Positions 2,064 through 61,737 of a stretch of 64,000 bases of DNA are shown one piece after another. Source of the stretch: Chrysemys picta bellii (lineage: Eukaryota); contig NC_088794.1 of the NCBI RefSeq assembly GCF_011386835.1, positions 22,568,001 through 22,632,000 of the forward strand. Reading direction: 5' to 3'. The notes below the pieces were generated by a model. The model did no database searches and was not told the DNA's origin. It saw nothing but the letters and a program-made list of their open reading frames with translations. The number at the start of each line of letters is the position of its first letter. The stretch's first letter is position 1. The position numbers and the translations under genes were made by a program.

Positions 2064-5000
2064 ATGGGTCGCTTCTCAGCCCGGCTGCTATTGCTGGCAC
2101 TAACAGGTAAGGAACCGAGAGATCGGCCCTCCCCTCCCGTAGACACAGAACATTCCGTTTGCTCTTGCACTCGTAGCACACTGCGCTTGTTTGCTTTTGC
2201 ACTTATCATTTTGGCAGGCTGCGAGCAGGCACGGAAATTGCGCACCCAGCTATTTGCAATGGCGAGAAATGCTTGGCTTGCTGGGGTTCCATATTTTCCC
2301 CCAGTCATTGCATATGTTATAGTGGAATGAAAAGCCATAGAGTGGATGTCAGAGAGGGTTTAACCAACCCCAATTTTTGGAAACAGACTTTTCTCATGCT
2401 AGAAGGGATTCCTGTCTCCAAACCAACCTAGGAACTGGGTGCCATGAGTCTGGAGAAAGTAACAGAGAATGTTCTGTAGGGAACAACCCTGCAAGATGAC
2501 TCAAGGATTAGATGATCAGACCAGTGCCAGTTTACCAGACAGAGCCAGCCTAGCTCCTGATCAGTTGTTCACATGCTAACCTGCAATGAAGATCGGGGGA
2601 CATAAGCTTCACAGTGGGGAAGAACATGGGAAGTTGAATAGGACGGAGGCAGTGGCAATGGATCGAGTCTCACCACAGAAGCTCCTTTACACAGAGATGG
2701 GAGCTTGGAGAACCAGTCACAGCAGCCTGAAGTTGCAGCATTGATGGGCAGGTCATTCTCACCAATATTTTCTTTCCTTGGCAGGGCCATGCCTGGCCAG
2801 AGAGGAGCTGGAATTGGTGACAGCTGTACAGGGAAGCTCTTTCAGTACAACGTGTTACTACAATAATGACAAGTATTCACTAGAGGAGAAATTCTGGTGC
2901 AAGATGCTGTCAGACCAGGAATGCCACAGCAGACTCTTCCTGAGCATCCAAGAAAAGGGAGAAAAATACCTAAATATTGCACCAAAGAGAAGGGTCGATC
3001 TAACAAACTCGGGAACAGGCTGCATTTCTGTGTCCATGACGGAGCTCCGGATAGAGGATTCAGGAACATACTTCTGTGGGGTTTTCAAACATCAAACAAT
3101 TATCCCATTGAAAAAGATTCAATTGACTGTTTCTTATGACGGTGAGCTAAAGACCTGTCATGACCTAGTTGGGACACAAATCAGCTCAAACCAGGATATT
3201 CCAAATTAGACTAATGCTCCATTCCTATTCCAAAGAAAACACAGGGTCTATAGATGTCAATTCCCCAGTATATGTTATAGAGAGAGATGGTTAAAATAAT
3301 AACCTTCAATTACATATCTAGACATAGAAACACCATGTGTATCATACACATATATGTATGTATTTAGATGTACACTTATCACATATCTATGTAAAAAGAA
3401 GAGCTGGTTAGGAACGTATTTCTCCCCCTCCCACCCCAGCCCACCTCACCCCCATCCCCAAAGAATTTTAACCAAAAAACCCCAAACAAACATTTTTAGT
3501 CTTTTTGTCAAAACAATGAAAACCAAAAGGTCTGGGTTGAAAACTCAAAAAAATTCAGTTTTCGATTGTTCAATTAAAACTTTTTTTTTTTAATGAAAAT
3601 TAACATTTCCCCCAAATGTCCTATTTAATCAAAAAGCCATTTTGCATCAAAAATTGAACCTTTTAGACAGAAAATCTTTGACCAGCTGGGATAGAAACCC
3701 CATGGGATGGAGAAACCCCACTCCCAATTTGAAGTCCTGGTTACCAGTTGGGATGCACAATAACAAGACTGGGCTTCTTCATTCACACCCTCCCTGTCCT
3801 GGTTGAGTGTTGTTTGTTGTCACTGCTGCTGAAAGGTGCTGCAATGACACCTCTGGACCCTTATCCTTACACACAGGGGAGGCCCAGCGTGGCCAGTTGC
3901 AGGGCAACTTTCCCCGTGCTACCCCAGCCAAACTACCTCAGCCCTGTCCTAGGTGGTCCCCCATTCTAGGGAGGAGAGAGGAATCCCCACTTCAGGGCTC
4001 ACTCAGTCCTCAGCTCCTCGGATGCTAAGACTGCCAGGAGCAGAGGGGCCAGTGGTGAAGGTGCATTTTCAGAGTGGTGGCAGCATTAGCAGATGCTCAG
4101 GCTGGTTCAGGGCTGCCTCGTGGTGATTGATGTGCAGTTTTCCAGTGGTAATTGTGCACAGCCAATCCTAGGAAATATTTTCCTTGGGCTGGAAGAGATT
4201 ATTTCCACGTCTTTTGCAATCTCCTTTTGGGATGGGGTTTAGTCTGATCCTTTGTCTTCCCATTTAGATGCAGGGGGGCATTTATACACCTACGGAACAT
4301 GTCTCTTTCCTTCCCTTTCTCACAATAACCAGTCACTGGTCTCTCTCTCCAGCTCCCATGAGGCTATCTGCCAAAACAGGAGACTCCATCTCGCTAAATT
4401 GTTCCTATTTTATGATGGACGACAGCAGAAGACCTAGTAATTTTACCTGGTGCAAAATGATAACCGCAACCAGATGTCAACCTGTCAGCAGCGTTAAGTT
4501 TGATCAGATTCTTAATATGCAAAAAAGGACCAGGATAAAGCTTGACCGGTGGAACAGAGTGATTATAGTGATGCTGGTGGCGCTCCAGCTACGTGACTCG
4601 GGGGAGTATCATTGTGAGACCCATCTCCAGGGAAGTACCGTGCTACTGAAGAGGATCATACTGAATGTTTTCAGTGAGTTTCTCAAAGAAAAGTGGCCTT
4701 CCCTTAAAAGTCAGCAAATTTTCATCCCCTGGTGGATGTGGTAACAGGGCAGAGCTCAGATGGGCTCCTCAGAGCAGGGAAATTGCAGGAAACCCAGAGA
4801 CAACTTCTGAATTTACCTTTTGAGACCTTTGATATTTACTAGTCTTATAAACAAACTCGGCCAGATCCTCTGCCCACGTAAATCAGAGGGGAATCATTAG
4901 TTGTTATGGACCTACACCAATTTACACCAGCAAAAGAAATGGCCCCAGAACTGATCTGAATGTTGCCCAAATCTCTGACTGAACTCATCCCTTTGTTATA

Positions 5001-7795
5001 GTTAATAACCCTGAAGAGGGTCAGATCATAAACTGAGCACTTGGATCCTTATCCAAGGGGACCTTTTCCCATATGTGGCTTATCGGTCCCTGCTCACACG
5101 TATTCTCCGACAGTAGCCATGCTTTCCCTTTTATCTGTCATAGACCCCAGACCTATCAGGTCCATCTCACCGGAGACACTCAGCAATTGGCAAGGTTGGG
5201 TGCCTGGAAACCAATGGTTGTCTAGACTATCCCTCTGGCCATTGCAGGGTTGTTCCTTCTAGTAGATTTTCCAAGGCGTGTGCCATACTAGCTGTAAATG
5301 TCTCCAGTGAAAAAGTGTAGCCCAATGGATGGTGTGGGGGCCTGGGAATCAGAAGATGTGAGTTCTAGTTCCATAGCTGCTACTCACTTTCTGGTGGTAT
5401 CGACACTAAACTTTTTTTGCTCAGATACTACGGTGAGAGGCACCACATAACAACCTGGATAGAATGCACAGGACTTCCGTGAGTGATTATTGGACTACAC
5501 TCCAATAAGCCTCACGGCTAGGACTCCTCTGGGCGGTAAAGAGCTCCTGCATCACACCCTATTGTCACATTCTCACTGTTAACCAACAAGCGATCACTCA
5601 CGATTAGTACGAGAAGACTCTAAAGCCTCGTCATAATTTCCCATCACTTCCAGATGTCAAGCAGGCCAGGGCTATGCAGGGGAGGGTCACTCACTCTTGT
5701 GTTTATTTTCAGCAAAAAGTGTGTATTATGATACAGTTAATGAGGCTACTTCGCCTCCCACTAACGAGGGGGAAACCGCCCACCCAACTGTGGCCAGCAA
5801 CAAGGAGCAGAGGTATGAACATCAAACAAACAAAAGTCTTCAGGGCTGACTTTAGAGTCCCCAGTGGGGATTTTCTGGATCTGCGGCAGATTAAAAGGGT
5901 GGGGTTGTAAAAGACACACACACACCCCATCCTCCGAGTCTCTTACAGGGTTTGATCTAACCTAGGGTTACCATACTCAAACATTTAAAAAAGAGGACAC
6001 TCCAGGGGGCCCCTCCCCCGCCCCAACTCCGCCCCTTCCCCGCCCCCGGCCCCGCCCCAACCCCACCCCTTCTCCGCCCCCATTCCAACCCTTTCCCCAA
6101 AGTCCCTGCCCCAACTCTGCCCCCTCCTCTGAGCACCCCGCATTCCCCCTCCCGCTCTGATCTTGGTTGGGGGTTGCTAAGTGCTTCCCTGCTCCCCACT
6201 TGCCCTGCAGCCTCTATGCCCTTGCCTGCCCTGCTCCTCCTCACCCTGCAGCCTCTGCACCCCTCCGCCCCCGCAGCCTCTGTGCCTCCTGCTCCCCACT
6301 CGCCCTGCAGTCTCTGCATTCCCCCTGCAGCCTCTGTGCCTCCTGCTCCCCACTTGCCCTGCAGCCTCTGCGCCCCCTGCTCCCCACTCACACTGCAGCC
6401 TCTGCACCCCCCCCACAGCCTCTGTGCCCCCTGCTCCCCACTCGCACTGCAGCCTCTGCACCCCCCCACAGCCTCTGTGCCCCCTGCTCCCCACTCGCAC
6501 TGCAGCCTCTGCACCCCCCCACAGCCTCTGTGCCCCTTGCTCCCCACTTGCCCTGCAGCCTCTGCACCCCCCCGCAGCCTCTGTGCCTCCTGCTCCCCAC
6601 TCGCCCTGCAGCCTCTGCACCCACCCGCCCCCGCAACCTCTGTGCCCCCTGCTCCCCCCTCGCCCTGCAGCCTCTGCACCCCCCCCCCGCAGCCTCTACA
6701 CACACACACACACACACACTCACACCCCTCACCCGGCAGAGGGAGAGCTGCAGGCTCCACGTTGACTCAAACACTTCCTCGCTGCTCTGTGGGGGAGGAG
6801 GGAGCGGGGGAGGGACTTTGGCTGCTAGAAGCCCTAGTGGCTGCGAGCGGCTTTCAATCAGGCCAGGCGTCCAATCAGCCACGCCGCACTCTGCAGGAGG
6901 GGAAATCCCGGACATTTCTACTTCATTAGAAATCCCCCCCGGACGGCCATTTAAGGCTGAAAAAGCCGGACATGTCCGGGGAAACCCGGACAGATGGTAA
7001 CCCTATCTAACCCCCTCAAGGCAGTGGAAAGACACCCACTGGCTGGACTAGGAGCTGGAGCAGGTCCTTAGTGAGCTGTCTGTTCTTTCCACTCCATAGG
7101 AATGATTCGTTTCCATCAGCTGCCCTTGCCTTCAGATTAAAGCTATTGTTTAAGACAACTGTCATCTTTGCAGCCTCCCATGAGTCCCAGCATGTGTGGG
7201 CAGGGAGAACGTTAGATAGAGACAGTGATTGTCTTTGGCTTTCTATGTTACCAAAATACAAGATTCCCATTAAAAGGTGGAAAACTTCCTTTCCTAGTTA
7301 AAGCTAAACTGTTCTATGTGTGGTTTCCCATAACAGCCTTCCTGAGGCCCATTTCAGTGCATTCCTCTGCATCATTATGGTACTCCTGGTTGCTAAATTC
7401 CCGACAGCCGTACTGATCTTTACCATCGCCAGCCGTCAGAGGAGCAGAGCCACGAGCGAGGGGAGCCAAAACCTGAACCAACACCAGCACCTCCCACTCA
7501 CAGGTGATCTCATGAGCGTTCACATGACAGAATTAACCCCCACTGGGAGACACTCCACCGTGCTGGGCTACAGATCTAGGGAAACAAGAGGGAAAAGAGC
7601 CCTGGGGAACTGGAATAAGGTTCCAGGGCAAACTTTGCTGCTTCCTAAGGGAGAGGATAAATGCTGAAGCTAAATGAACGTGTAATGAGCCTGCCATCCA
7701 TATGGGAGGTTGTCAGCAACTGTCTCCATTTCTCATCTCTCACCCGCTTTCTAATCTGTGTTCCTCTTCCATTTCCAGTACAAGAGAACAGGTAA
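2064..7795 (+). CDS. Gene A1: two-IgV TREM/NCR2/CD300-like receptor, activating type (TM Lys, short tail), 351 aa
   Basis: Exons: 2064-2106 (signal MGRFSARLLLLALTG), 2785-3141 (V1, C..WCKx6C..DSGTYFC), 4353-4673 (V2, LNCS..WCK..DSGEYHC), 5144-5194 and 5713-5812 (Ser/Thr/Pro stalk), 7337-7503 (TM SAFLCIIMVLLVAKFPTAVLIFTIA), 7779-7795 (tail VQENR*). All introns are GT-AG, phases 1,1,1,1,2,1, total 1056 nt with an open frame. Confidence 0.88.
5320..5465 (+). mobile_element. Degenerate tRNA-derived (MIR/CORE-like) SINE in intron 4 of A-type genes
   Basis: gcctgggaatcagaagatgtgagttctagttcc head and cagatactacggtga tail; present in A1, A2, A3 and I. Confidence 0.4.
5963..7005. mobile_element. Non-autonomous hAT-like DNA transposon carrying a GC-rich minisatellite (intron 5 of A1)
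   Basis: TIRs tagggttaccat/atggtaacccta, TSD tctaacc (5956-5962, 7006-7012). Empty site in I (gatctaaccccctc, about 59957) and in A2. Confidence 0.82.
6185..6700. repeat. Compound minisatellite, about 53-bp unit (about 34-bp and about 19-bp subunits starting cagcctctg)
   Basis: Unit such as tctgtgccccctgctccccactcgcactgcagcctctgcacccccccacagcc, with a 53-bp period at 6421/6474; followed by a (CA)n tract. Confidence 0.9.
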
Positions 7796-8184
7796 CGCTT
7801 GGACAGGATGGGAGGAGGAGGAAGAGGATGGGCAGAAAAATAAAGAACTCCAAGAGTCTGTCCGTCCAAACTCCCAACTCCCCCAGGACAAACGCACATA
7901 CATGTAGCGATGCTGCAGAGATGGGGACAGGATGAGAAAGCTCTGCTCGGTTTTCCCCAGGCCCCCATGCCAGATAACCTTTGCTTGCTATGCCAGGCTT
8001 TGCCTGCCAGGCTAATGGAAAATGCTTCCAAGCAAAAGAAACCAAAGATGCAGCATTTGACAGTGCATTCGCCTAGCACACGAGTGGGACTTTCACTGGC
8101 GTATGTTAGCAGCCACAGCGTGTCTCGGGTGCAATCTATAGAGGGTGCAATGGGCTATATGAATTACTCACCCAGGTGATCCTG

Positions 8185-8190
8185 AATAAA
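8185..8190 (+). terminator. Poly(A) signal of A1
   Basis: AATAAA followed by a GT-rich tract; conserved at 29141 (A2) and 41242 (A3), and at the homologous position in B genes (18092, 51146). Confidence 0.65.
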
Positions 8191-10800
8191 GGGCATTGTT
8201 GTGTCTCATGTGTCTTGTCTTGATTCACTGAAACTCAGTGTTGTCATGAAAAACTAGCAGTTTTACTAAATGTGTCCAGCCTGGCTGGATGTCTCCAGAA
8301 AACCAACTGAATGCTCCCCACGTGTCCAGGGAGATACCTTACCCAGAGGTGGACCAAAATGGGGCAGTAGTGCACTGGATCAGGTAATCTTGGGCCATCT
8401 CACTCGAACACTCCCAGTACATAAAACAAGTCCAGGAATCCGTTGCAGGGCTGAGTTAGCATTTAACAACACAGAGTGGGAGCAGAGAGATGGGTTAAAA
8501 CTGTGTTTTATCAGTTATATTCTGCAGCTAGTAACTTGTGACAGCCGAGGATACCTCTCTGTGTTTCCCCACAAAGCACAGAGGTGGTCAGTGCCCTAAG
8601 ATTCACACTGGGTCTGTAGGAACATAAAACGAATACTGCTACCAGGTGTCAGTGGCCCCACCCTAAGAGTTAAAGGAGAATTTTCTCTCTCACCCTATGT
8701 ATATGCTGCAATCGGATATGTGATTTGTAGTTTGTGCAAACATACCCGTGGTCACTTTAATCTGGTTAACACACTAATAATAGCAGTAAACATGTGGCAA
8801 CATGGACTACAGGGCAGGCTGAAGAAAACTGCTCAGGGACCCTGGGTATATATATGCATTGTTAGCCTGCACCGAGGTCTATACCACGGTGTCTTCACTG
8901 CTGTTTTTAGCCATGTTAGCTTGATTAAAGCTAATACATGTGTCTACCTAAGCTGCAATCACACCTACGATTGCAGCTTAGACATACCCAGAGATTGAGA
9001 CCTTTCCCAGGGCGACAGAGAGCCTGGTGCTCTGGTTGCCACCTGCTGCAAAGGGGCTTGCTGCTCTGTCATATCAGTGTGCAGCGTTATCCAAGATGGT
9101 TATCTGCACAGTCCCCTCCCCAGAGGGCCAGAGCTAAGAGCCACCAAACTCACATCACCTCAGAGAGCAGCGCACACACAGTGCCAAGGGACAGAAACAA
9201 TGTTGTCTCTGTTCGGGGGGATTAAGGCCTGTCATAAGGATCCTCACAAACAATGTACCAGCGTGGGGCAACCCCCTTGGTGATAGTCCCTGTGTCAGAG
9301 GATTGGGGCCTATCTTAGAGCGCCTTCTTTCTACCAGACCAGGCTTTCCTCTCACGGAATTAGCTCACTCTCTGAGGTAATTCTGTCTGAGCTCTCAAGA
9401 AATCCAGGGAAGCAATTTTCAGCAATTTCATTTTAAGCCTTCTTAACAAAACAAAACAAAAAACCCTCATCAACTCTTCTCTTATAGTCTGTGCTGGCCA
9501 AGGAGTCCCTTCCCCAAGCCTGACTCTCACGCCAGTAACTCCAGTAACCAACATTTCCTGGCTCTTACCACCGAGTCTCAGCAATAAAGGGCTCCACGCA
9601 GTCTCCCTTCTGTCCGTTTGGTTTCTGGCGCAATTCCTCTTCGCAGTAGCGCCAGCAGCAGTCCAACGGGCTCGCAGCCCCTGGCCCCTTAGCTTCCTGG
9701 GGGGTGTTGTAGTCCTCTCTGCCATTTCCTGCTGCCTTTTTTTTTCAATAAGGGTCAGCTAATTAAATTTCCAGCTCTCTCTCAGGTTCAGTGAGCAGGG
9801 CTAATCGGCCAGCCAGCCCCAGGCCTCTGACCCCAGAGGAATGGCATCCCTTACACCTTCACACCTTGCTTAATGCAAACACAAACAGAGGTTTGTTTGA
9901 AGATACAATTCACTGGGCTCCTTGCACATTGTTACTGACAGTCTCCCAGGTTCAGGTGCCAACCACGTTCTCCAGGGAGCTTCTGTCCCACACAGAGCCC
10001 TTGTGGGTCATTTTCCACATGCTCAGGTTCATACAGGAGCAGGACACGCTGACTCTCACCTCTTTCCCACTGGGTGAAGATAAGAGGTGCAGCATAGGCT
10101 CTCTCAAAGGTGTGGTAGGCAACCATAGGCAGTGCAATCAGTACAGGGGTCACAAGGAAGCCAACCAAACTATCCTCTATCAGCAGAGCTGTCTGGAAAA
10201 CTTCTGTTTCATGAAACATTTTGAAGGGAGATCATGGCACTGCAAGAGGGTAGCGGGAAAGCCCTGGTCTCCCTACACGCCAGCTGTCCCAGGCTGATGG
10301 AGAAGTTCCTTCTTCACTGTGAAATTTAGAGCAGCCTCCAGACCATTTGAAACACCTTGATGCCCCCCGACCCTGGCTAGTGGAGATGGGTGCAGGAGAG
10401 GATCTGGCCCACATTGTGTAATACAGAAACTAAGAGTTAACAAAATAACATACACTGATATTAAAAATGTTATTTGAAGCTATAATATGCACCATCTTCT
10501 TGCCCAGCTCCCTATGTTCAAGTGTCAATAGCTAAGTTGTTGTGCTTTTTTAAATGAGAAGCAGCTGGTAGTTCAAATACACAGAAACACAGGCACCCGC
10601 CCCAAAGACTAAATTGAGGGACGTTGCTCCAGTTAGAGAATTTTCCCAACAATTCCAAACCGACACTGTCACTCCAGAGCAACACGTGACAGACAGCGAC
10701 AAAGGGAGTTCACTTCCTACCCGTGAGGGGAAATTCATCTTCACAGCACCGAAGACGCCTGGAGGCTGCATTCCACTTCTCCAAGACCTAAGCCTACAGG

Positions 10801-13800
10801 ATGGGTTGCTTCCCAGCCCGGCTGCTATTGCTGGCACTAGCAGGTAAGGCATCGAGAAATTATCCCTCCCCTCCCGTAGACACGGAATATTCCATTTGTA
10901 GCACACTGCACTTGTTTGCTCTTGCACTTATCACGTTGCCGGCTGCGAGCAGGCACGGAAATTGGGCTCCCAGCTATTTGTGATGGCAGGAAATGCTCTG
11001 TCTGCTGGGTCTCCATATTTTTTTCCTCAGCAATTGTATATTTTAGAAAGAAAAGCTATCAAGTGGATTTCAGGGAGGATTTGAACACCCCAAATTGTGA
11101 AAACAGGCTCCTCTCCTGCTAGAAGGGATTCCTTATCCAAACCCACCTAGGAATTGGGTCCTGTCAATCTGGAGAAAGCAACAGAGAATGTGCTGTAGCG
11201 AACACTCCTACACTGAAAAGGGGGTGGACTAGATGATCAGACCAGTGCCAGTTTACCAGACTGTACCAGACAGAGCCAGCCTAGCTCCTGATTAGTTGTT
11301 CACACTCTAACCCACTTTGAAGACTGGCTGATGTAAGCTCCAGAGTGGAACAGAGCATGGACTATTCAATGGGAAGGAGACAGCTGATATGCACTGGCGC
11401 TCAGGACAGAGGCTCATTTAGGCAGGGGTAAGGAGCTTAGAATAACAATCACAGCAGCCTGAAGTAGTCGCAGGGATGGCAGGTCATTGGTTAAGAGCCA
11501 CTGTCCCCACAGGTCATTCTCAACTCTAACGTCAATTTGTTCTTTCCTTGGAAGGGCCCTGCATTGCAGGAAAGGACCTGGAAATGGTGAGAAGAGTGCG
11601 GGGAGGCGCGCTCACTACAGTGTGTCACTACAACGAACACAAGTATTTACAAAGTGAGAAATTTTGGTGCAAGGAGCTGTCAGACTTGGAATGCCGCACC
11701 ATAGTCCAGAGCTCCCCCACAGCAGGAAGGAATTCTCTAAATTCTCCAGATGCAAGGGTCAGCCTAAAAGACTTGGAAATTGGCTGGATTTCTGTGTCCA
11801 TGACGGAGCTCCGGGTAGAGGATTCGGGAATATACTGGTGTGGCGTTTCCGATCATATGAAGATTATCCCATTGAAAAAGATAAAAGTGGCAGTATCTTA
11901 TGAAGGTGAGCTACAGATCAGTGAAGAGCAGGTTGGGACACAAATCAACTCAAAGCTGGATATTCCAAATTAGATTCATGCTCCATTCCCAGGTTTAAAA
12001 CAAATAAAAGGAAGTTTTATTCACACAGCACAGTCAACTTGTGGAACTCCTTGCCTGAGGAGGTTGTGAAGCCTAGGACTATAACAGGGTTTAAAAGAGA
12101 ACTGGACAAATTCATGGAGGTTAAGTCCATTAATGGCTATTAGCCAGGATGGATAAGGAATGGTGTCCCTAGCCTCTGTTTGTCAGAGGGTGGAGATGGA
12201 TGGCAGGAGAGAGCTCACTTGATCATTACCTGTTAGGTTCACTCCCTCTGGGGCACCTGGCATTGCCACTGTCGGTAGACAGGATACTGGGCTGGATGGA
12301 CCTTTGGTCTGTCCCAGTACGGCCATTCTTATGCTCTTATGTTCTTATTCCCAGTCCTGTTTCTAAATAAAACACATTCTGTGCAGACAGATACGCCAGT
12401 GATACTACAGAGCGATGGCTAATATATTTTAACCCCAATTTTATATCTACTTATAGAAAAAACATACGTATCAGATGCATGTATGCATTTAAATGTGTGT
12501 GTGTATACATAAACAAACACACACACACATGCATCTATGCATCACATGCTAGCACATATATAGGTAGAAACCAGAGCTGGTTGGGAAATTTTCTTGCCCT
12601 ATGAAAACTTTTGATAAAAACAAAAAACCGTTTTTCCATTGTTTTTCAAAACACCACAAACAAGGGTTTCTGACCCCTTTAAAACAAATTGTTTTGGGTT
12701 AAAACTGAATATTTTCAGTTATGGGTTGTTGGATAAAAAAAAAATCCATATTTTTCCAGGAAGGTGAACATTTTTTGCACATATTCTCTGTTTCACACAC
12801 AGCCATTTTCCATTAAAAACAAATTCCCCTTTTAGACAGAAAATCTTTGGCCAACTCTAATAGAAACCCCACGACATGGAGAAACATCACTCCCAATTTG
12901 AAGTCCTGGTTACCAGTTGGAATGACCAATAAGAAGGATGGTCAGACCAGCTGCTAGACATCCCATCTCTGGGGCATCTTCACTTCTACCACCCCTGTCC
13001 CGTTTAACAGCTGTGTCTTGTTACTGTCCGTGAAAGGTGCCGCAACAGCAACCCTGGAGCCTTATCCTTACACACTGGGGAGGCCCAACATGGTGCAAGC
13101 TTCCCCATGCTCCTCGGATGCTAAGACTGCCAGGAGCAGAGGGGCTAGTGGTGAAGGTGCATTTTCAAAGTGATGGCAGCATTAGCAGATGCTCAGGCTG
13201 GATTCAGGGCTGCCCCATGGTGATTGATTGCAGCTTGGATACTGTGCAGTTTTCTGGTGGTAGTTGTGCACAGCCAATCCTAGGAAATATTTTCCTTGGG
13301 CTGGGAGAGATTATTTCCATGTCTTTTGTAAGCTACTGTTGGGCTGGAGTTTGGTCTGATCCTTTGTCTTCAGATTTAGATGCAGGGGGCATTTATACAC
13401 CCACAGGACATGTCTCTTTCTTTCCCTTTCTCACAATAACCAGTCACCGGTCTCTCTCTCCAGCTCCCATGAGGCTATCTGCCAAAAAAGGAGACTCCAT
13501 CTCCCTAAATTGTTCCTATTTTATGATGGACGACAGCAGAAGACCTAATAATTTTACCTGGTGCAAAATGATAACCGCAACCAGATGTCAACCTGTCGTC
13601 AGCGTTGAGATTGATCAGATTGTTAATATGCGAGAAAGGACCAGGATAAAGCTTGACCGGTGGAACAGAGTGATTATAGTGACCCTGGTGGCGCTCCAGC
13701 TACGTGACTCGGGGGAGTATCATTGTGAGACCCATCTCCAGGGAAGTACCGTGCTACTGAAGATGATCACACTGAATGTTTTGGGTGAGTTACTCAAAGA

Positions 13801-18091: not shown

Positions 18092-18097
18092 AATAAA
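18092..18097 (+). terminator. Poly(A) signal of B1
   Basis: AATAAA homologous to the A-type signal (aataaa(a)ggcattgttg). Confidence 0.6.
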
Positions 18098-18126
18098 AGG
18101 CATTGTTGGGTGTCAGATTGACAAGA

Positions 18127-32699: not shown

Positions 32700-32704
32700 C
32701 AGTG

Positions 32705-43800: not shown

Positions 43801-43857
43801 CAGTACCGAAGACGCCTGGAGCCTGCATTCCACTTCTCCAAGACCTAAGCCTACAGG

Positions 43858-49800: not shown

Positions 49801-50738
49801 AACAGTTAAAGCTTTGTCACAGCTAAAACACAAATTGTCAACATCACATGCCACAATATACAAAGTAAATATCCTCACATCAAACTGTGATCCATTCTCA
49901 AGCAGCATTTTTCTTACTTTGACTATCTGTACATTTAGATGATTATCGATGACAACATTTTTGCATTGGCTTGTGCGTGTATGATGAAACCAACATTTAC
50001 CGATAAAAATGCAATCCTTGTGCATAGCTCAAACATATGATACAGCGGACCCTCGCTAGAACGCGCGTCTATATAGCGCAAAATCGCTTATAGCCCGGGA
50101 CCACGCATGGATCCCAAATGTAATTACTTTCATTGGAATCCATGGTAATGCAGTCCCCACTATTACGCGGGACTGCGCATGGATCCAAAACCCCACGTTC
50201 TAGTTAGGGTCCAGTGTACTAAAATAAAATCCACTGTTGTGTTTCAGATCTCCAAGGCTAGTTACACTAGGGAGAGTCAAACACCACCACAGATGTGACT
50301 GCCCTATTATCCACACCAGGGTGACCCTGTTAACTGCAATCATTACTATTTGTATTATGGTGGCACCCAGGAGCTCCAGTCATGGATCAGAGCCCCCTTG
50401 TGCTAGGCACTGTACAAACACAAAACAGAAAGTTTTTCTCTGCCCCAAAGAGCTTGCAATCAGAGTAGAAGACAATAGACAAGAAATGCATGCAACAGAC
50501 AGAGGGAACTAGGTAACAGTAAGATCATACTGACCAGCCTGATAAGCAGTGGTCACAATCCTGATTTACCCTGCCACCAATGGAGACCCAGGCTTCAAAT
50601 ATGGGTGGGGGGCAGAGGCACGTTTTCAGAAAAGCAGACAGCTCCTTGAAACCAGCATGGATTCCTCATCCCTTACTCCATACTTAACCAATTTCCTGTT
50701 TTCTTTCCAGGATTAAAGAGAGGAAAGGAAAACACTAG
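43858..50738 (+). CDS. Gene B2: two-IgV receptor, activating type, paralog of B1, 334 aa
   Basis: Exons: 43858-43900, 44613-44963, 46525-46845, 48126-48219, 48333-48500 (TM ..GLLGTKFLTALL.., phase-2 donor), 50711-50738 (tail RIKERKGKH*). 1005 nt. Confidence 0.85.
45051..45404 (+). mobile_element. 5'-truncated CR1 LINE 3' end (intron 2 of B2)
   Basis: Paralogous to 11993-12346 with the same TSD. Confidence 0.85.
50043..50216. mobile_element. Tc1/mariner (Tigger-like) MITE (last intron of B2)
   Basis: Paralogous to 16990-17163. Confidence 0.75.
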
Positions 50739-51768
50739 TAAGACAAGGATGTGATGGAAGGAGAAGTAGGCAAAGAAAAAGAATTCCAAGAGTCTTTCCA
50801 GCCAAGCTCCCAACTCCTCCAACACTTATACATATACACGCAGAGATGCTCACACAGATATTGACACCTGCAGAGAGAGACATGCTTCGGATGAGAAAGT
50901 TCTGCTCAGTTTTCCCAGTGCCTCCAGCCATGACAGATAAACCTTTGCTTGCTAACCCCTGTTTTACCTGCAAAGCTAATAGACGATGCCTAGGTGCAAA
51001 AGGAACTGAAGACACAGCATTTGGCAATGTGCACACCTAATTCCGGAGAGAGACTTGGAGTGTTGCACCTGAGCCATCTAGCCATCAGGACCAATCTCCA
51101 GGGGCCGCAATGGGGTATATGCATTACTCACACATAGGATGCTAAAATAAAAGGCATTGTTGGGTGTCAGATTGACAAGCGTATTGTCCTGATTCATCCG
51201 AACTCCGGGTGTGCCCACACTGCAATCAACAGTGTGACAGCAGGACACATAGGCATACCCAAGTTCGCGTTGATCTAGCTAGCGCCGGTAAGAACACCAG
51301 TGAACCTGCAGCAGCATGAGCTGTACAATCCCCCCAGGACTCTGGGTATGTTGAGCTGCTAGCCCAAGCTGCTGAGGATTCGCTGCTATCATGCACTGGG
51401 CTTGAGGGACATAGAGCTATTAAAGTCAGCAGATACCAGTGACAGAGTGCTACGGGCTACATTTCTCTCCCTGATTCAGCAAATTCCTTTCCCAGGAAAG
51501 GTGATAATTGTACCATGCTCTGGATCCCACTAGCAGCTGGGATACTGGCTGTTTTGCCCGATGAGTCTGCAGACATATGGAAGCTGTTACCTGTACTGCC
51601 TTTCGCAAATAGGCTGTGAGCTGAGACCCGCCAAACTCATGCCACCTCAGAGAGCAGTGCCCGCAGTGCCAGGAAAAAGAGACGGTGCTGTCTGTTTGTA
51701 GCCAATGAGACAAGGTAGGGGAGTGATACCACAATTTGATGCACACACAAAGCATCAAGTGAGCTGAA

Positions 51769-53637: not shown

Positions 53638-54420
53638 CCATACATTTGGGAACGTTGGCAACTCTGTCTCACACACACATTGGGGGTGGGCAGAGGAAGG
53701 ACAGACCCCAAAAACCATATAATCTTTCTATGTAAAATTCATGATTTGGGGACAAATCATGATTTTGTGGGGGCTAACTCATGATTTTTTAGCCTGGCAG
53801 TAATGCACACAAAAGCTAGGTACTGTTTTTATTCTCAAAACCACAGCTCATTTCACCTGGGTTTGAGGTTCTCTGCCTTGCAATCATGGAAGAGGAATCC
53901 AGGGCCAGGCTGGGGGCGGTAAGGAGAGAGCGGGGCTCTTTGCTCACAGTCTTCAGACTCAGGGAGGATGAATCCTGTAGGTTTCCTACCCGCAGCAGCT
54001 TGGATCTTTGAGGACCAGAGTTTCAGCACTATTAGCTGACAATAGCACAAGAACCAGCTGCACAAGACAGAACAATGGGCTCGGAGCCTGGTCACTGCTC
54101 AGTGTTAAAAGATCTGTTGTTTCCTGATTTCACAAGAAACCAGGCTGCAAAAATAGGGTAACCCAGCTGTGGGTTTTTTTCCATTCTCTTATTGCGGTGT
54201 CATCCGCATGCCAGTTTGACTCATCACCGGCCCCAAAGCAAAGCTGAATCTGGCCATCCTGGGAGAGGATCTCGTTACACAATGCAAAACACTGACACCA
54301 GCAAGAACTCACCCCCAGAATGCTGCACCCGAACGGCCAAACCCAGTACCAGCAGCAATGCTCTCCTTTTCCCCGCACTGGTTGTAAACCCAAGGCAGAG
54401 CCAAACAAAACTGACTTATA

Positions 54421-54694
54421 GGGCTTGTCTACACACACAATTGGTTTGTGGAAAGTTGAGGTGTGAGCGTACGCTGTACTAGCCTGCCGCGGACTAACTG
54501 CCCACGTGACCCTGCTGACGCTGACTAACAGTTCGTCAATCCACTGTGATCTACTCCTCTTTGAAACAGGATTAGATCAAAACACACCAACGAACCATTA
54601 ATGCGCATCGGTGGGTGCACAGGCACTAACCATGCGGGCTAGTGTGGGTCTCACACCAGCTTGCTGCCAACTAAATATTTGTGTAGACAAGCCC
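54421..54694. mobile_element. PIF/Harbinger-type MITE upstream of I
   Basis: Paralogous copy of 716-989. Confidence 0.78.
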
Positions 54695-55763
54695 ATACTC
54701 CCACCCCGCACACACACACACACACACACACACACCATGAAGACTATAGCTGGTTTTCCCATCCCGTGAAAAATGTCAAGATTTCAAAATGTTTCCCCTA
54801 CCACACTGGGATGAAACCGAGCCCTTTTGAAGTTTTTTTGTGAAACACCCAATAGGAAGAAGATCAGAATAACCAATAGCCCAGGAGTTATGGCAGTCAC
54901 CTCAGTTCTGAGTGCCCAGTGCGCTGTTCCAATGAACAGGTCATTATTTATACAAAGTTGGAACAGCTTCAACAGGAGAGATTGAGAGAGACGCATCCCA
55001 GAACAGCCAATAGGACTGGATGGATCAGCTGAGCCAAGCCATGCATTCCAATCTCCCACATGGAGGCGAACCAACATGATCCCGCTTCCCTTTCCTCAGC
55101 ACTGTAATCCTCCTCCTTTTTGTATGGCTTTAACAAAAATATCCTCTCCGGGTCAACATCCCAAACACAGAGCTAGAGGATGACACAAGGGACCCTGATG
55201 GGAAGCATTTGGGGGGTGCTCTACTAAGGAGATGGCATGGCCTAATGGATTGGGCACTAGCCTCAGACTCAGGAGACCCGTGTTCTGCTCCTATCTCTGA
55301 CGAGCTGTGTAACACCAGGCAAAGGAATTGCCCATCTCTGTTTTCCTAGCAGTACAATGTAGCTATGGCTAAGTCCCCCCTTTATAAAGTGCTTTGAGAT
55401 CTAGGGGTACAAAACTAAAAGCTGTTCATGTACTATACACCAATGCTTCAAATGTCATTAAAAATAGAACATCTGCTAATCTCTCTTTTTTCCCCTCACT
55501 CCCCATTTCCGAAAGCAGATATCTAAACATGTGCTAAAACGAGAAGCAGCTGATAGCCAAAATGCAGGCTTCCTGTGTGAAGGCTCAGATTAGGACTGTG
55601 GTAGAAACATCTTTCCAACAATTGCAAACGATACTGTCACTCTGGAGCATGACGACACAAACAGTGACAAAGGGAGTTCACTGCCGACCCATCTTGACAG
55701 CAACAAAGAAGCCTCAATGCTGCATTCCACCTCTCCAAGATCTAAACCACTTCCCATTACAGG

Positions 55764-58700
55764 ATGGGTCGCTTCTCAGCCCGGCTGCTATTGCTGGCAC
55801 TAACAGGTAAGGAACCGAGAGATCGGCCCTCCCCTCCCGTAGACACAGAACATTCCGTTTGCTCTTGCACTCGTAGCACACTGCGCTTGTTTGCTTTTGC
55901 ACTTATCATTTTGGCAGGCTGCGAGCAGGCACGGAAATTGGGCACCCAGCTATTTGCAATGACGAGAAATGCTTGGCTTGCTGGGGCTCCATATTTTCCC
56001 CCAGTCATTGCATATGTTATAGTGGAATGAAAAGCCATAGAGTGGATGTCAGAGAGGGTTTAACCAACCCCAATTTTTAGAAACAGACTTTTCTCATGCT
56101 AGAAGGGATTCCTGTCTCCAAACCAACCTAGGAACTGGGTGCCATGAGTCTGGAGAAAGTAACAGAGAATGTTCTGTAGGGAACAACCCTGCAAGATGAC
56201 TCAAGGATTAGATGATCAGACCAGTGCCAGTTTACCAGACAGAGCCAGCCTAGCTCCTGATCAGTTGTTCACATGCTAACCTGCAATGAAGATCGGGGGA
56301 CATAAGCTTCACAGTGGGGAAGAACATGGGAAGTTGAATAGGACGGAGGCAGTGGCAATGGATCGAGTCTCACCGCAGAAGCTCCTTTACACAGAGATGG
56401 GAGCTTGGAAAACCAGTCACAGCAGCCTGAAGTTGCAGCATTGATGGGCAGGTCATTCTCACCAATGTTTTCTTTCCTTGGCAGGGCCGTGCCTGGCAAG
56501 AGAGGAGCTGGAATTGGTGACAGCTGTACAGGGAAGCTCTTTCAGTACAATGTGTTACTACGATAATGACAAGTATTCACTAGAGAAATTCTGGTGCAAG
56601 ATGCTGTCAGACCAGGAATGCAACAGCAGACTCTTCTTGAGCATCCGAGCAAAGGGAGAGAAATACCTAAATATTGCACCAAAGAGAAGGGTCGATCTAA
56701 CAAACTTGGGAACAGGCTGGATTTCTGTGTCCATGACGGAGCTCCGGATAGAGGATTCAGGAACATACTTCTGTGGGGTTTACGATCATCAGACAATTAT
56801 CCCATTGAAAAAGATTCAATTGACTGTTTCTTATGACGGTGAGCTAAAGACCAGTCATGACCTAGTTGGGACACAAATCAGCTCAAACCAGGATATTCCA
56901 AATTAGACTAATGCTCCATTCCTATCCCAAAGAAAACACAGGGTCTATAGATGTCAACTCCCCAGTATATAATATAGAGAGAGATGGTTAAAATAATAAC
57001 CTTCAATTACATATCTAGACATAGAAACACCATGTGAATCATACACATATATGTATGTATTTAGATGTACACTTATCACATATATATGTAAAAAGAAGAA
57101 CTGGTTAGGAACGTATTTCTCCCCCTCCCACTCCAGCCCACCTCACCCCCATCCCCAAAGAATTTTAACCAAAAAACCCCAAACAAACATTTTTAGTCTT
57201 TTTGTCAAAACAATGAAAACCAAAAGGTCTGGGTTGAAAACTCAAAAAAATTCAGTTTTCGATTGTTCAATTAAAACTCTTTTTTTTTAAATGAAAATTA
57301 ACATTTCCCCCAAATGCCCTATTTAATCAAAAAGCCATTTTGCATCAAAAATTGAACCTTTTAGACAGAAAATCTTTGACCAGCTGGGATAGAAACCCCA
57401 TGGGATGGAGAAACCCCGCTCCCAATTTGAAGTCCTGATTACCAGTTGGGATGAACAATAACAAGACTGGGCTTCTTCATTCACACCCTCCCTGTCCTGG
57501 TTGAGTGTTGTTTGTTGTCACTACTGGTAAAGGTGCTGCAATGACACCTCTGGACCCTTATCCTTACACACAGGGGAGGCCCAGCGTGGCCAGTTGCAGG
57601 GCAAGTTTCCCCGTGCTACCCCAGCCAAACTACCTCAGCCCTGTCCTGGGTGGTCCCCCATTCTAGGGAGGAGAGAGGAATCCCCACTTCAGGTCTCACT
57701 CAGTCCTTAGCTCCTCAGATGCTAAGACTGCCAGGAGCAGAGGGGCCAGTGGTGAAGGTGCATTTTCAGAGTGGTGGCAGCATTAGCAGATGCTCAGGCT
57801 GGTTCAGGACTGCCCCTGTAGTGATTGATATGCAGTTTTCCAGTGGTAATTATGCACAGCCAATCCTAGGAAATATTTTCCTTGGGCTGGAAGAGATTAT
57901 TTCCATTTCTTTTGCAAGCTCCTTTTGGGATGGGGTTTGGTCTGATCCTTTGTCTTCCCATTTAGCTGCAGGGGGGCATTTATACACCCGCGGGACTTTT
58001 ATACACCTCTCTTTCCTTCCCTTTCTCACAATAACCAGTCACCGGTCTCTCTCTCCAGCTCCCATGACGCTATCTGCCAAAAAAGGAGACTCCATCTCGC
58101 TAAATTGTTCCTATTTTTTGATGGACGACAGCAGGATACCTAATAATTTTACCTGGTGCAAAATGCTAACCGCAACTAGATGTCAACCTGTCGTCAGCGT
58201 CAAGATTGATCAGATTCTTAATATGCAAAAAAGGACCAGGATAAAGCTTGACCGGTGGAACAGAGTGATTATAGTGACGCTGGAGGCGCTCCAGTTACGT
58301 GACTCCGGGGAGTATCATTGTGAGACCCATTTCCAGGGAAGTACCATGCTACTGAAGAGGATCTCACTGAATGTTTTGGGTGAGTTACTCAAAGAAAAGT
58401 GGCCTTCCCTTAAAAGTCAGCAAATTCTCATCCCCTGGTGGATGTGATAGCAGGGCAGAGCTCAGATGGGCTCCTCAGAGCAGGGAAATTGCAGGAGACC
58501 CAGAGACAACTTCTGAATTTACCTTTTGAGACCTTTGATATTTACTAGTCTTATAAACAAACTCGGCCAGATCCTCTGCCCACGTAAATCAGAGGGGAAT
58601 CATTAGTTGTTATGGACCTACACCAATTTACACCATCAAAAGAAATGGCCCCAGAACGTTGCCCAAATCTCTGACTGAACTCATCCCTTTGTTATAGTTC

Positions 58701-61700
58701 ACAAATATTAAACTTTTCTTTGATCACTTGATAATTACCTGTTCTGTTCATTGCCTCTGGGGCACCTGGCATTGGCCACTGTCAGAAGACAGGATACTGG
58801 GCTAGATGGACCTTTGGTCTGATCCAGTATTTCCGCTCTTATGTTTGATACCCATTTTCATGCCTCTCCACCCTTCCTACTCTGAGCCATTATAGGACAC
58901 AGAAATACAGGAAATAAATTGGGAGAAGCTATTCCTGTGGTCTTCCTGACTAGACTGAAAATGGAGCCTCACAAGGGATAGCCTGTCCCCAAGACAATTC
59001 ATCCCAATAACCCCGAAGAGGGTCAGATCATAAACTGAGCACTTGGATCCTTATCCAAGGGGACCTTTTCCCATATGTGGCTTATCGGTCCCTGCTCACA
59101 TGTATTCTCCGGCAGTAGCCATGCTTTCCCTTTTATCTGTCATAGACCCCAGACCTATCAGGTCCATCTCACCGGAGACAATCAGCAATTGGCAAGGTTG
59201 GGTGCCTGGAAACCCAATGGTTGTCTAGACTATCCCTCTGGCCATTGCAGGGTTGTTCCTTCTAGTAGATTTTCCAAGGCGTGCGCCATACTAGCTGTAA
59301 ATGTCTCCAGTGAAAAAATGTAGCCCAATGGATGATGTGGGGGCCTGGGAATCAGAAGATGTGAGTTCTAGTTCCATAGCTGCTACTCACTTTCTGGTGG
59401 TATCGACACTAAACTTTTTTTGCTCAGATACTACGGTGAGAGGCACCACATAACAACCTGGATAGAACGCACAGGACTTCCGTGAGGGATTATTGGACTA
59501 CACTCCAATAAGCCTCAGGGCTAGGACTCCTCTGGGTGGTAAAGGGCTCCTGCATCACACCCTATTGTCACATTCTCACTGTTAACCAACAAGCGATCAC
59601 TCACGATTAGTACGAGAAGGCTCTAATGCCTCGTCATAATTTCCCATCACTTCCAGAATGTCAAGCAGGCCAGGGCCATGCAGGGGATGGTCACTCACTC
59701 TTGTGTTTATTTTCAGGAAAAAGTGTGTATTATGATACAATTAATGAGGCTACTTCGCCTCCCACTAACGAGGGGGAAACCGCCCACCCAACTGTGGCCA
59801 GCAACAAGGAGCAGAGGTATGAACATCAAACAAACAAAAGTCTTCAGGGCTGACTTTAGGGTCCCCCGAGGGGATTTTCTGGCTCTGCTGCAGATTAAAA
59901 GGGTGGGGTTGTAAAAGACACACACACACCCCATCCTCCGAGTCTCTTACAGGGTTGATCTAACCCCCTCAAGGCAGTGGAAAGACACCCACTGGCTGGA
60001 CTAGGAGCTGGAGCAGGCCCTTAGTGATCTGTCTGTTCTTTCCACTCCATAGGAATACTTAGGGGATGAGCCCAGAGCCCAGCTGTGCTGTGCCGTCTCT
60101 GTCTCTTGCATTAAGAACACAGCCTAAGACCAAACAATATCACATGTCAAATGAGAGCCATTACCAGGCCTGATCAAAGAAGACCCTGATAATTACCCTG
60201 ATGAAAGACAGCCCGTGGAGGGGGTACAGCATCCTAATGAGGGGGTACAGCATCCTTTGAATTCTAGTAGCACTGCCAGCAAGTGCTAGAAAATAATTTA
60301 AGTTCCTGAGTTTATCCCTTGCATGAAGCAACCCTGGGAAAATACAGCAGGGCCAGAACCCCCAGAGGCATCAATCAGCATAGCCCCATTGACGTCAGTG
60401 GAATTGCATCAAGGTACAAGCAGCCAGTGTGATTTTTGAATGCTGAATTTAGATCTTGGAGCCTTAATCCAGTTTCCAACACACAGAGTCCCCTCCCAAA
60501 TTAACCAGGTCACCTTTGATGCCAAGAATATTAATGGAGATATTGTGCATTTCCTTGCAGAATTCTTTATGTTGTCCTGGCACTGGGCTCCTTCCTGGCT
60601 GGCAGTGTACTGATTGCTATCATGGCTACTATTTTCACCAAAGGGAGAAAAAGAGGTACATCTCTATCACTTGTCCAGTTTTCATGCAGTTTGGGTTTGT
60701 TCCCACTGGCCTGGATCAACAGTGTTGAGGGTCATGCTGAATGGAAATGGGTGCCGGGGGGGGGGAGGAGAGAGAGAGAGTTGCTAGATCTTTCACCCCA
60801 TTACCCACTTTTAGTTGTATGTAAAAATACAAAGGGTTAGTTACAGTTTTTACATTAAATTGAGATTCTGTCTTTCACAGTAGGGAACGGGCTGAATTTT
60901 GGTGAACACCCTAACTGCAGACTAGCAGCAGAGCAGGTAGGTTGAAGGTCTGGTATTTCTAGCACTTTGTTCCATCTCCTCCATATAGCTATTTGAAGCA
61001 GATGGAAGCAGGATTGTCTAGTGTTTAGAGCAGGAGGATGGGAATCAGGATTCTTGTATTTCTGTTTGTCTGCCTGTAATACAAATATTACCATGACCAC
61101 AAGCTGCATGAAGTTTAATGTCCCTGAATCTGCAATCTGATCAGCATGGGCTCAAAGGTCTAAACTCAGAGATCCTTGAATGCTAGATGATTGCAAAGCA
61201 TTCATATTACTGAGCAAGCCAATATGGGAAGTGCCTCAGTCCAATTCCTCAGTCCTTACAGTAGGGTTCATATAGGGGGGTGTTCTCTGAGCACCCCAGA
61301 GAAATGTATTTCTTTTCCCATGTCCCCCCCCCCCCCATTCCCCCTGCAGTTTCACCCTCTAGAGAGGAGATTTTTAGCAGTGGTAAAGTGAGACTTAATA
61401 TTCAGAAAATGGAAATGTTTAAAAGGATGATATTCGATTTATTCTCCTATTATTTGTGGCTTTCCAGAAGGATGAAGGACACCCCAGAGATGCCACCCCA
61501 GATGGGGAGTTGAAGAACGGTATAATATATGCCATGCTAAGGCTCCAACCCAAGCCAAAGCCAGACGATGTCACGTATGCCAACGTGGAGCCTCCACCAA
61601 AACCAAAAGGTGCCAAACGTTCTGCTGAGCCCTCAGCTGTCCTGTTCTCCTCAGGCACCGTGGAGTATGCAACCATCATCTTTGGAGACTCACCTCCACG

Positions 61701-61737
61701 GTCTGGGACTAAAGAGAAACAAACCAGCCCTAACTGA
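55764..61737 (+). CDS. Gene I: two-IgV TREM/CD300-like inhibitory receptor (uncharged TM, three ITIM-like motifs), 429 aa
   Basis: Exons: 55764-55806, 56485-56838, 58059-58379, 59146-59196, 59717-59816, 60561-60655 (TM), 60881-60936, 61468-61737. Phases 1,1,1,1,2,1,0 chain without a break to give 1290 nt ending in TGA at 61735-61737. Confidence 0.87.
58721..58845 (+). mobile_element. Short CR1 3' fragment (intron 3 of I)
   Basis: Paralogous to 26522-26646. Confidence 0.7.
60561..60655 (+). CDS. Uncharged transmembrane exon of gene I
   Basis: Acceptor ttccttgcag, phase 2: RILYVVLALGSFLAGSVLIAIMATIFTKGRKRG, donor gtacat. Hydrophobic core with no charged residue, followed by a basic stop-transfer segment. 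Confidence 0.85.
60881..60936 (+). CDS. First cytoplasmic exon of gene I
   Basis: tctttcacag|..56 nt..|gtaggt; phase 1 in, phase 0 out, VGNGLNFGEHPNCRLAAEQ. It bridges the TM exon and the terminal exon in frame. Confidence 0.75.
61468..61737 (+). CDS. Terminal cytoplasmic exon of gene I with ITIM/ITSM-like motifs
   Basis: Acceptor gctttccag. Encodes IIYAML (61522-61539), VTYANV (61570-61587) and VEYATI (61660-61677). Confidence 0.88.
   Translation, partial: KDEGHPRDATPDGELKNGIIYAMLRLQPKPKPDDVTYANVEPPPKPKGAKRSAEPSAVLFSSGTVEYATIIFGDSPPRSGTKEKQTSPN

Follow-up and report, generated by a model that had tools for sequence, protein, structure and literature searches.

A probable paired TREM receptor cluster between the TREM2 and TREM-B/TLT-1 orthologs of the painted turtle

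The paired-receptor principle is known from KIR, Ly49, SIRP, CD300 and mouse Trem4/5-Treml6. TREM2 signals via DAP12 through a lysine in its membrane segment, and we know of no activating twin of TLT-1 (TREML1) in mammals. In chicken, TREM-B1 and TREM-B2 have been published as TREMs with two V-set domains, and TREM-A1 as a single-V receptor whose membrane region is charged (PMC4788293). TREM-B1 has an uncharged membrane region and a tail with an immunoreceptor tyrosine-based switch motif (ITSM), TIYAAI, and two inhibitory motifs of the immunoreceptor tyrosine-based class (ITIMs), VMYVNI and VEYATL (PMC4788293); it recruits SHP-2 and is found on thrombocytes (PMC4788293; Turowski et al. 2016, Viertlboeck et al.). 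Mouse Trem4 and Trem5 bind DAP12, need it for surface expression and pair with the ITIM-bearing Treml6; the immunoglobulin (Ig) domains of the pair are 78-89% identical, and the activators, which have a membrane lysine, come from an ITIM-bearing ancestor, in a model in which the ITIM gene was duplicated and the ITIMs were then lost (PMC4855714). Here we analyze a stretch of 64,000 bp from the painted turtle Chrysemys picta bellii (hereafter the window) that contains six related receptor genes: A1, A2 and A3 (A-type), B1 and B2 (B-type), and gene I. We consider it likely that gene I is a TREM-B/TLT-1 ortholog and that the A- and B-type genes are activators built on a TREM2-type module, which together form a paired set in the TREM cluster.

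Six intact genes lie on the plus strand between positions 2064 and 61737, and every intron has GT-AG borders in explicit exon models based on motif and paralog comparison (Table 1). The first-pass annotation of this DNA had proposed six spliceable open genes, and all six do read open with canonical borders. B1 and B2 follow the layout of the A-type genes but have a domain 1, a stalk and a membrane exon of a different kind. Five of the six models (A1, A2, A3, B1 and I) equal RefSeq proteins of the same species residue for residue, and the set is therefore far beyond chance. Since these exact proteins exist, the supposition that automated calling would miss the genes was wrong; RefSeq has all of them except a stand-alone B2. 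Our B2 model is 98.8% identical to an older RefSeq protein, XP_008175817.1, and in the current release B2 exons 3-6 occur only inside A3/B2 read-through isoforms (P0002 and P0040). RefSeq names for the locus are inconsistent (pIgR-like, TLT-1, uncharacterized). The order in the turtle is TREM2 - A1 - B1 - A2 - A3 - B2 - I (in the TREML1 position) - ADCY10-like, and the expansion is thus placed exactly between the TREM2 and TLT-1 orthologs. The six genes first proposed stand; the cluster extends past the window, with the TREM2 ortholog immediately upstream. Searched against proteins, the domain 2 region matched turtle entries only, namely membrane-lysine forms of ~335 amino acids and ITIM forms of ~410 amino acids. 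Such forms were found in Trachemys, Chrysemys, Gopherus, Mauremys, Chelydra, sea turtles, Pelodiscus and Pelusios, under names as varied as 'polymeric immunoglobulin receptor-like', 'trem-like transcript 1', 'CMRF35-like' and 'uncharacterized'.

Both Ig exons exceed the Pfam V-set cut-off, V-set-like exons recur on the plus strand in a stop-to-stop scan, and the WCKx6C motif reported earlier, that of the extra disulfide, is present in both Ig domains of all six genes. The five genes with a lysine in the middle of the membrane segment are also as first described, with VLLVAKFPT encoded at 7380, 28336 and 40437 and GLLGTKFLT at 15319 and 48376. The A-type membrane segment, AFLCIIMVLLVAKFPTAVLIF, has one central lysine and no acidic residue and is followed by a tail of 32 residues; the B-type segment, VLCIMVGLLGTKFLTALLIFI, likewise has one central lysine and no acidic residue, with a tail of 35-42 residues. 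Neither tail contains tyrosine. The last exons contribute VQENR in the A-type genes, RIKERKGKH in B2 and GLKRGKENTSKTRM in B1, which fits the 5-14 residues that had been expected of them. Gene I has an uncharged membrane segment, ILYVVLALGSFLAGSVLIAIMATIF, in exon 60561-60655, and its last exon encodes three ITIM-consensus motifs, IIYAML, VTYANV and VEYATI, in agreement with the uncharged segment and three tyrosine motifs noticed at first. At the nucleotide level the A-type genes are 95-98% identical to gene I in domain 1, 98% in the stalk and 91-93% in domain 2; at the protein level the ectodomain identity to gene I is 88-92% for A and 66-68% for B. The description of the gene I ectodomain as almost identical to that of A1-A3 therefore suits domain 1 and the stalk and needs qualifying for domain 2 and for the ectodomain protein.

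Gene I has the two V-set domains, the uncharged membrane region and the three tail tyrosine motifs, in order, of chicken TREM-B1/B2; its first motif is an ITIM, whereas that of chicken TREM-B1 is an ITSM. The turtle and chicken genes both sit in the TREM cluster beside a single-V lysine-bearing TREM, bird proteins of this type are 46% identical to gene I from end to end, and orthology holds for domain 1 and for domain 2 separately. A Colinus protein has exactly TIYAAI and VMYVNI, with VEYATV as its third motif. In an exhaustive search with the Trachemys ortholog of gene I, full-length matches were found in Crocodylus and Gavialis (45%) and Apteryx (46%), and also in pythons, a newt and the coelacanth. 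The tail motif order, the 45-46% full-length identity to crocodile and kiwi, and the flanks with ADCY10-like/NFYA and TREM2 identify gene I as orthologous to chicken TREM-B1 and as matching mammalian TREML1/TLT-1 in position. The two-domain form is not new, having been described as chicken TREM-B1/B2; the activating two-domain form is absent from the chicken paper (PMC4788293). All two-domain genes of chicken are inhibitory, and its activating member, TREM-A1, has a single V domain, while the turtle has five two-domain genes with the activating lysine module.

We built a maximum-likelihood tree of V domains. Domain 1 of turtles, crocodilians and birds forms one clade (support 100/99) and domain 2 another (100/97), whose sister is the single V domain of the TREM2 type (89/79). 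In domain 1, the B-type sequences (99/96) and the I-type sequences (95/84; Pelusios and Pelodiscus among them) each form a clade, and by this tree both clades are old. Domain 1 of A1-A3 nests beside gene I of the same species.

Synteny points to the same placement. The human order is NFYA, ADCY10P1, TREML1, TREM2 (PMC5477265). In kiwi, a single-V gene with a membrane lysine is followed by a two-V ITIM gene and then by NFYA on the opposite strand, whose exon reads HESRHRHAMARKRGEGGRFFSPKEKDSPHMQ. In Pelodiscus the gene I ortholog is followed by a minus-strand protein of 1,799 amino acids with guanylate-cyclase and AAA_16 domains, an ADCY10-type cyclase. Dermochelys and Chrysemys have the same ADCY10-side flank in colinear arrangement, with a nucleotide identity of 88-91%. 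The kiwi NFYA flank has no tblastx or blastn match in the turtle flank downstream of gene I, because the ADCY10-like gene intervenes in turtles. The synteny check proposed earlier thus comes out on the TREM side, through TREM2, the ADCY10-like gene and, in kiwi, NFYA. Gene I shares with TLT-1 the slot by ADCY10(P1)/NFYA before TREM2 and an ITIM of the VxYATx type (for TLT-1, PMC4788293 cites VTYATV); they differ in the number of V domains, one in TLT-1 and two in gene I. As an aside, the ADCY10-type soluble adenylyl cyclase gene is apparently intact in turtles, whereas humans have only the pseudogene ADCY10P1 at this place.

These data bear directly on whether the genes belong to the CD300 (CMRF35-like) or the pIgR family rather than to TREM, which we regard as very improbable. 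Database names such as 'polymeric immunoglobulin receptor-like' and 'CMRF35-like molecule' at NCBI would suggest it, and domain 1 matches pIgR D1, NKp44 and CD300f in the PDB at similar E-values. The neighborhood of TREM2, ADCY10-like and NFYA argues otherwise, as do the tail motifs and full-length homology, which fit a TREM-B of the chicken type, and domain 2, whose best single-domain PDB match is TLT-1 and whose sister in the tree is the TREM2-type V domain. pIgR has four to five tandem Ig domains (two in teleosts) and a long sorting tail, and the turtle genes have neither that four-to-five-domain architecture nor the pIgR tail. We rejected pIgR membership on the two domains, the ITIM or short tail and the TREM locus, the PDB likeness being one of shared V-set subtype only; we rejected CD300 membership on the TREM synteny and the two V domains, CD300f being only one among several equal PDB matches. 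The TREM/CD300/pIgR-like signature recognized at first is accordingly narrowed by synteny and motifs to TREM, and the locus is the core of the painted turtle TREM cluster, not a CD300 or pIgR locus.

The A-type genes owe their membrane and tail exons to a neighbor. The V domain of the Emys ortholog of the upstream gene ('TREM2-like') scores 5e-30 against structures of human TREM2, much better than against any other family, and the upstream gene carries an A-type lysine membrane exon, ICIITVILVAKFLTAVLIFTIASRQRSRATREGSQNLNQHQHLPLTG. The 3' parts of A1-A3 are 95-97.6% identical to the 3' 2.4 kb of TREM2, a segment that begins ~240 bp before the membrane exon and takes in the last exon and flank. 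In a self-BLAST comparison, A1, A2, A3 and I show 96.6-97.7% identity among their 5' parts, and this shared stretch stops in intron 4 (at 5962 in A1, 27856 in A2, 38961 in A3 and 59965-60056 in I). Because their 5' parts match gene I and their 3' parts TREM2 to this degree, A1-A3 are, on nucleotide identity, recent chimeras: gene I supplied exons 1-4, TREM2 supplied the membrane and tail exons, and the two parts meet in intron 4. All three copies have one and the same 3' breakpoint. A-type genes were found in Chrysemys and Malaclemys, and the derived motifs HFSA and KFPT are common to both; therefore a single origin of the chimera before the Chrysemys-Malaclemys split is indicated. Unequal crossing-over between gene I and TREM2, which are on the same strand, would yield such a chimera plus a duplicated B gene. 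Once formed, the chimera was amplified by segmental duplication. In the PDB, the A-type membrane/tail peptide matched nothing but an archaellin, by chance (E 0.03), which speaks structurally neither for nor against a TREM2-type helix.

The B-type module is an older relative of the TREM2-type exon. Its membrane exon, GLLG[AT]KFLTALLIFI…LLPLTG, can be aligned with that exon, and the match is clearest in the side-necked turtle Emydura; the module is found in Pelusios, Emydura, Chelydra and sea turtles including Dermochelys, a spread across turtles that indicates an older acquisition. The TREM2-type module was thus, by comparison of exons, probably acquired at least twice, anciently in the B-type and recently in the A-type. 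In both types the ectodomain consists of two V-sets of the TREM-B type, not the single V of TREM2. The lineage-specific expansion claimed at first therefore applies to A1-A3 and to the B1/B2 duplication, which are recent; it does not apply to the B-type itself, which is old and present in side-necked and sampled hidden-necked turtles.

Self-BLAST shows that the window is assembled from very young segmental duplications (Table 1). A GC-rich minisatellite of ~53-bp units, detected by Tandem Repeats Finder and a composition profile, sits exactly between the I-derived and the TREM2-derived segments in A1 and A3; A2 lacks it and carries a different stretch of ~200 bp there (27857-28053), and both are missing from gene I. 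A 306-bp insertion is common to gene I and A2 and missing from A1 and A3, which marks A2, as far as the sequence tells, as closer to I in intron 3. Within this insertion lies a very high-copy interspersed repeat (58540-58939 in I intron 3; 26500-26806 in A2), with a word depth of more than 1 million in the DNA run described below and of thousands in the RNA-like runs.

Read evidence comes from contigs of three RNA-like runs (three studies) and one independent DNA run. In the DNA run, the 3' part specific to gene I has a word depth of 23-25 and the part that it shares with A1-A3 a depth of 50-127, although such depth is not a strict copy number. Contigs of this run fork at the A2/I breakpoint, 60056, and a contig without the 306-bp insert coexists with the I form. 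These results argue for several copies in another individual. They also bear on the suspicion, raised as a possible refutation, that part of the copy number is an assembly artefact, in which the A1-B1 and A3-B2 blocks or A2 would be haplotypes or mis-joins and there would be fewer activating genes. Blocks 96-98% identical over 6-18 kb invite this explanation, immune clusters are often mis-assembled, and a single assembly was examined; we nevertheless judge it quite unlikely. The divergence of 2-3% is, in our judgement rather than by a measured figure, well beyond that expected between alleles. The copies further differ by indels (the 306-bp insert in I and A2 only, the minisatellite in A1 and A3 only), the depth, fork and insert-less contig come from an independent DNA run, and Malaclemys too has separate A, B and I genes.

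Gene I is expressed. All six of its joints, with GT..AG ends, were found in RNA-like contigs, and none of the six in contigs of the DNA run. Some RNA-like contigs, 1.3-1.5 kb long, span exons 4 to 7 and extend into the gene I 3' untranslated region. The joining of 59816 to 60561, on which the first-pass annotation had staked its reading, is present in the RNA-like contigs and absent from the DNA run. One mRNA contig from another turtle (Logan SRR27880519_37167; 907 nt, intron-free) joins exons E1-E2-E3-E4 and then exon 6, mapping to window positions 55701-59816 and 60876-60906, and so skips the membrane exon of an I-type gene. The skip from exon 4 to exon 6 shifts the frame and the protein ends after SRKRAEFW. 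The transcript likely encodes a soluble isoform, a prediction reminiscent of soluble TLT-1.

What was proposed as a paired architecture is borne out in the arrangement of the genes, with lysine-bearing, short-tailed receptors beside an ITIM twin of near-identical ectodomain. Paired receptors are recognized by high ectodomain identity, separate genes and members of ITAM-adaptor type (ITAM, immunoreceptor tyrosine-based activation motif) and ITIM type (PMC4855714), and the turtle set has all of these, within less than 60 kb on one strand. By analogy with described receptors, ligand binding to gene I would lead to phosphorylation of its ITIM tyrosines, recruitment of SHP-1/SHP-2 and dampening of the cell, which the chicken case suggests may be a thrombocyte or myeloid cell. 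In the A- and B-type receptors the membrane lysine would pair with the aspartate of DAP12 (TYROBP), giving ITAM signalling and DAP12-dependent surface expression. Because the A-type module is near-identical to that of turtle TREM2, we infer DAP12 coupling for it. The A-type and I receptors presumably bind the same or similar ligands; among relatives, fibrinogen is a known ligand of TLT-1, and anionic lipids of TREM2. The counterbalance idea put forward earlier, in which pathogens target the inhibitory member, is a plausible hypothesis.

Several points weigh against this reading. The turtle map reaches the ADCY10-like gene and stops short of NFYA, whose adjacency is known from kiwi. The copy number comes from one assembly together with k-mer depth in one other individual. 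The E4>E5 and E5>E6 junctions of the A-type genes and the junctions of the B-type genes rest on RefSeq models, and the A2 isoform P0004 in RefSeq retains intron 5 and has a longer tail. In the A1 3' region, 15-31% of words occur in RNA-like runs; because the TREM2 3' region is 96-97.6% identical there, these hits are not proof of A-type expression and could derive from TREM2 mRNA. Finally, the A-type helix has a proline two residues past the lysine (AKFPT), a leucine-to-proline change that TREM2 lacks and that might alter adaptor pairing.

The last of these feeds an alternative in which the A-type genes are transcribed and are not DAP12 activators, being instead decoys, proteins that stay inside the cell or young genes in the course of being lost, with the proline disturbing the pairing. 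The change from AKFLT to AKFPT is confined to A-type genes, the ratio of nonsynonymous to synonymous substitution (dN/dS) is near 1 in some A pairs, and the intron-retaining isoform and the ambiguity of the A-type RNA words against TREM2 would fit as well. Yet all three copies have kept open frames, splice sites and the lysine, the KFPT module is kept in Malaclemys and has hence persisted since before the genera split, and the A-type tail is at least 90% identical to the TREM2 tail. We find the alternative unlikely and continue to favor activating receptors paired with gene I.

The two Ig domains have evolved differently. Domain 2 exons of A, B and I are 91-100% identical and group in the tree by species, not by gene type: Dermochelys B joins Dermochelys I (99/92), and all Chrysemys copies fall together (95/92). 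The domain 1, stalk and membrane exons of B, in comparison, are only 54-76% identical to those of A/I. The pattern in domain 2 is, judged from identity and tree, one of exon-restricted concerted evolution between gene types. Among A1, A2 and I, divergence is 2-5% in the domain 1 exon, 7-9% in the domain 2 exon and 1-3.5% in introns; synonymous divergence in exons above that of introns points to gene conversion. Pairwise dN/dS lies at 0.4-1.0, and the lone value above 1 (2.56, A1/A3 versus B1 in domain 2) comes from 15 differences. The pattern fits an exon patchwork made by gene conversion with relaxed or diversifying constraint, a patchwork that confounds dN/dS, so that these ratios are no proof of positive selection.

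Like mouse Trem4/5-Treml6, the turtle genes are lineage-specific activating/inhibitory pairs in the TREM locus whose activators have a membrane lysine. The mouse receptors have a single Ig domain, however, and the turtle A-type arose by exon shuffling with TREM2; the origins of the mouse and turtle pairs are independent. A wider reading, possible yet doubtful in our view, is that turtles armed the ectodomain of TREM-B/TLT-1, an inhibitory receptor of thrombocytes or myeloid cells, with the DAP12-coupling module of TREM2 twice, the B-type before the split of side-necked and hidden-necked turtles and the A-type in the Chrysemys and Malaclemys lineage. Gene conversion would have homogenised domain 2 while domain 1 diversified, the footprint of a long contest in which TREM-B is engaged by a pathogen or an endogenous ligand, and read-through splicing might give one ligand domain either polarity.

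Our literature search on turtle or reptile TREM, CD300 and paired receptors found no paper on this locus, and none of the literature searched describes an activating two-V form, TREM2 exon shuffling that happened two times or concerted evolution of domain 2. The locus is an instance of the known paired-receptor principle and no new mechanism class. It offers a datable example of the creation of an activating twin by recombination within one intron, with both parent genes still adjacent. It brings the pIgR-like, CMRF35-like, TLT-1 and 'uncharacterized' genes of more than 12 turtle genomes into one TREM framework, indicates that two-domain TREMs, published only as inhibitory receptors in chicken, exist in activating form, and nominates receptors for reptile thrombocyte and myeloid regulation.

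Table 1. Features of the painted turtle TREM cluster (positions are those of the window unless a locus or chromosome is given; aa, amino acids)
Feature	Position	Strand	Description
Window on chromosome	CM062321.1, ~22.57-22.63 Mb		Chrysemys picta bellii
TREM2 ortholog	L002:1-3504, just upstream of window position 1, same contig		single-V, 293 aa
Gene A1	2064-7795	+	334 aa; signal, IgV1, IgV2, stalk, Lys membrane exon, 17-nt terminal exon; exact match XP_065447682.1
A1 exons	2064-2106, 2785-3141, 4353-4673, 5713-5812, 7337-7503, 7779-7795	+	open model
Gene B1	10801-17700	+	341 aa; B-type two-V receptor, membrane Lys, tail GLKRGKENTSKTRM; exact match XP_008175817.2
B1 exons	10801-10843, 11555-11905, 13464-13784, 15069-15162, 15276-15448, 17657-17700	+	open model
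Gene A2	23550-28751	+	334 aa; A-type; exact match XP_065447684.1
A2 exons	23550-23592, 24271-24627, 25851-26171, 27516-27615, 28293-28459, 28735-28751	+	open model
Gene A3	35060-40852	+	334 aa; A-type; exact match XP_065447687.1
A3 exons	35060-35102, 35782-36138, 37352-37672, 38712-38811, 40394-40560, 40836-40852	+	open model
Gene B2	43858-50738	+	334 aa; B-type, tail RIKERKGKH
B2 exons	43858-43900, 44613-44963, 46525-46845, 48126-48219, 48333-48500, 50711-50738	+	open model
Gene I	55764-61737	+	412 aa, seven exons; probable inhibitory TREM-B / TLT-1-like receptor; exact match XP_065447685.1 'trem-like transcript 1 protein'
I exons	55764-55806, 56485-56838, 58059-58379, 59717-59816, 60561-60655, 60881-60936, 61468-61737	+	open model
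Gene I joints	55806>56485, 56838>58059, 58379>59717, 59816>60561, 60655>60881, 60936>61468		RNA-like contigs
Domain 2 exons	A1 4353-4673, B1 13464-13784, A2 25851-26171, A3 37352-37672, B2 46525-46845, I 58059-58379	+	
A-type Lys membrane exon	7337-7503; copies 28293-28459, 40394-40560	+	CIIMVLLVAKFPTAVLIFTIASRQRSRAT
B-type Lys membrane exon	15276-15448; copy 48333-48500	+	CIMVGLLGTKFLTALLIFIVASQRRSRAT
TREM2-derived segments	A1 7098-9641, A2 28054-31094, A3 40155-42698		95-97.6% identity
I-type 5' module	54153-60056	.	in A1 448-5962, A2 21941-27856, A3 33450-38961; self-BLAST
Duplication block with A1 and B1	238-18125	.	twin 33240-51179 (A3 and B2), ~98% identity, ~33 kb offset; self-BLAST
Minisatellite	6009-6701 (A1 intron 4); twin 39008-39758 (A3)	.	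~53-bp units, ~58% GC
ADCY10-type gene downstream of I	L001:18237-25974, L004:18509-25413, L005:21570-29972	-	turtle loci

Some variation in transcripts and relatives was also seen. The ends of the B-type membrane exons (15400-15448 versus 48460-48500) differ in length by 5 nt, and the one terminal exon (17657-17700, 50711-50738) is therefore read in two frames. Both resulting endings, that of B1 and that of B2, recur among other turtle species, and both frames seem to be in use. In the RefSeq isoforms P0002 and P0040, A3 exons 1-2 (35060-36138) are spliced to B2 exons 3-6 (46525-50738), and isoforms of Chelonia, Gopherus, Chelonoidis and Pangshura fuse a B-type domain 1 to an I-type ITIM tail; such joined isoforms are either real read-through splicing or an artefact of the near-identical domain 2 exons. 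Proteins with multiple V-sets and a membrane lysine are also predicted in Anas (P0099), Pluvialis (P0097) and Pelodiscus (P0111). They have a different membrane segment (…INKVL… / …ASKTL…) and V domains outside the turtle domain 1 and domain 2 clades, and may represent one more activating branch, so far undescribed, within the TREM/CD300 superfamily.

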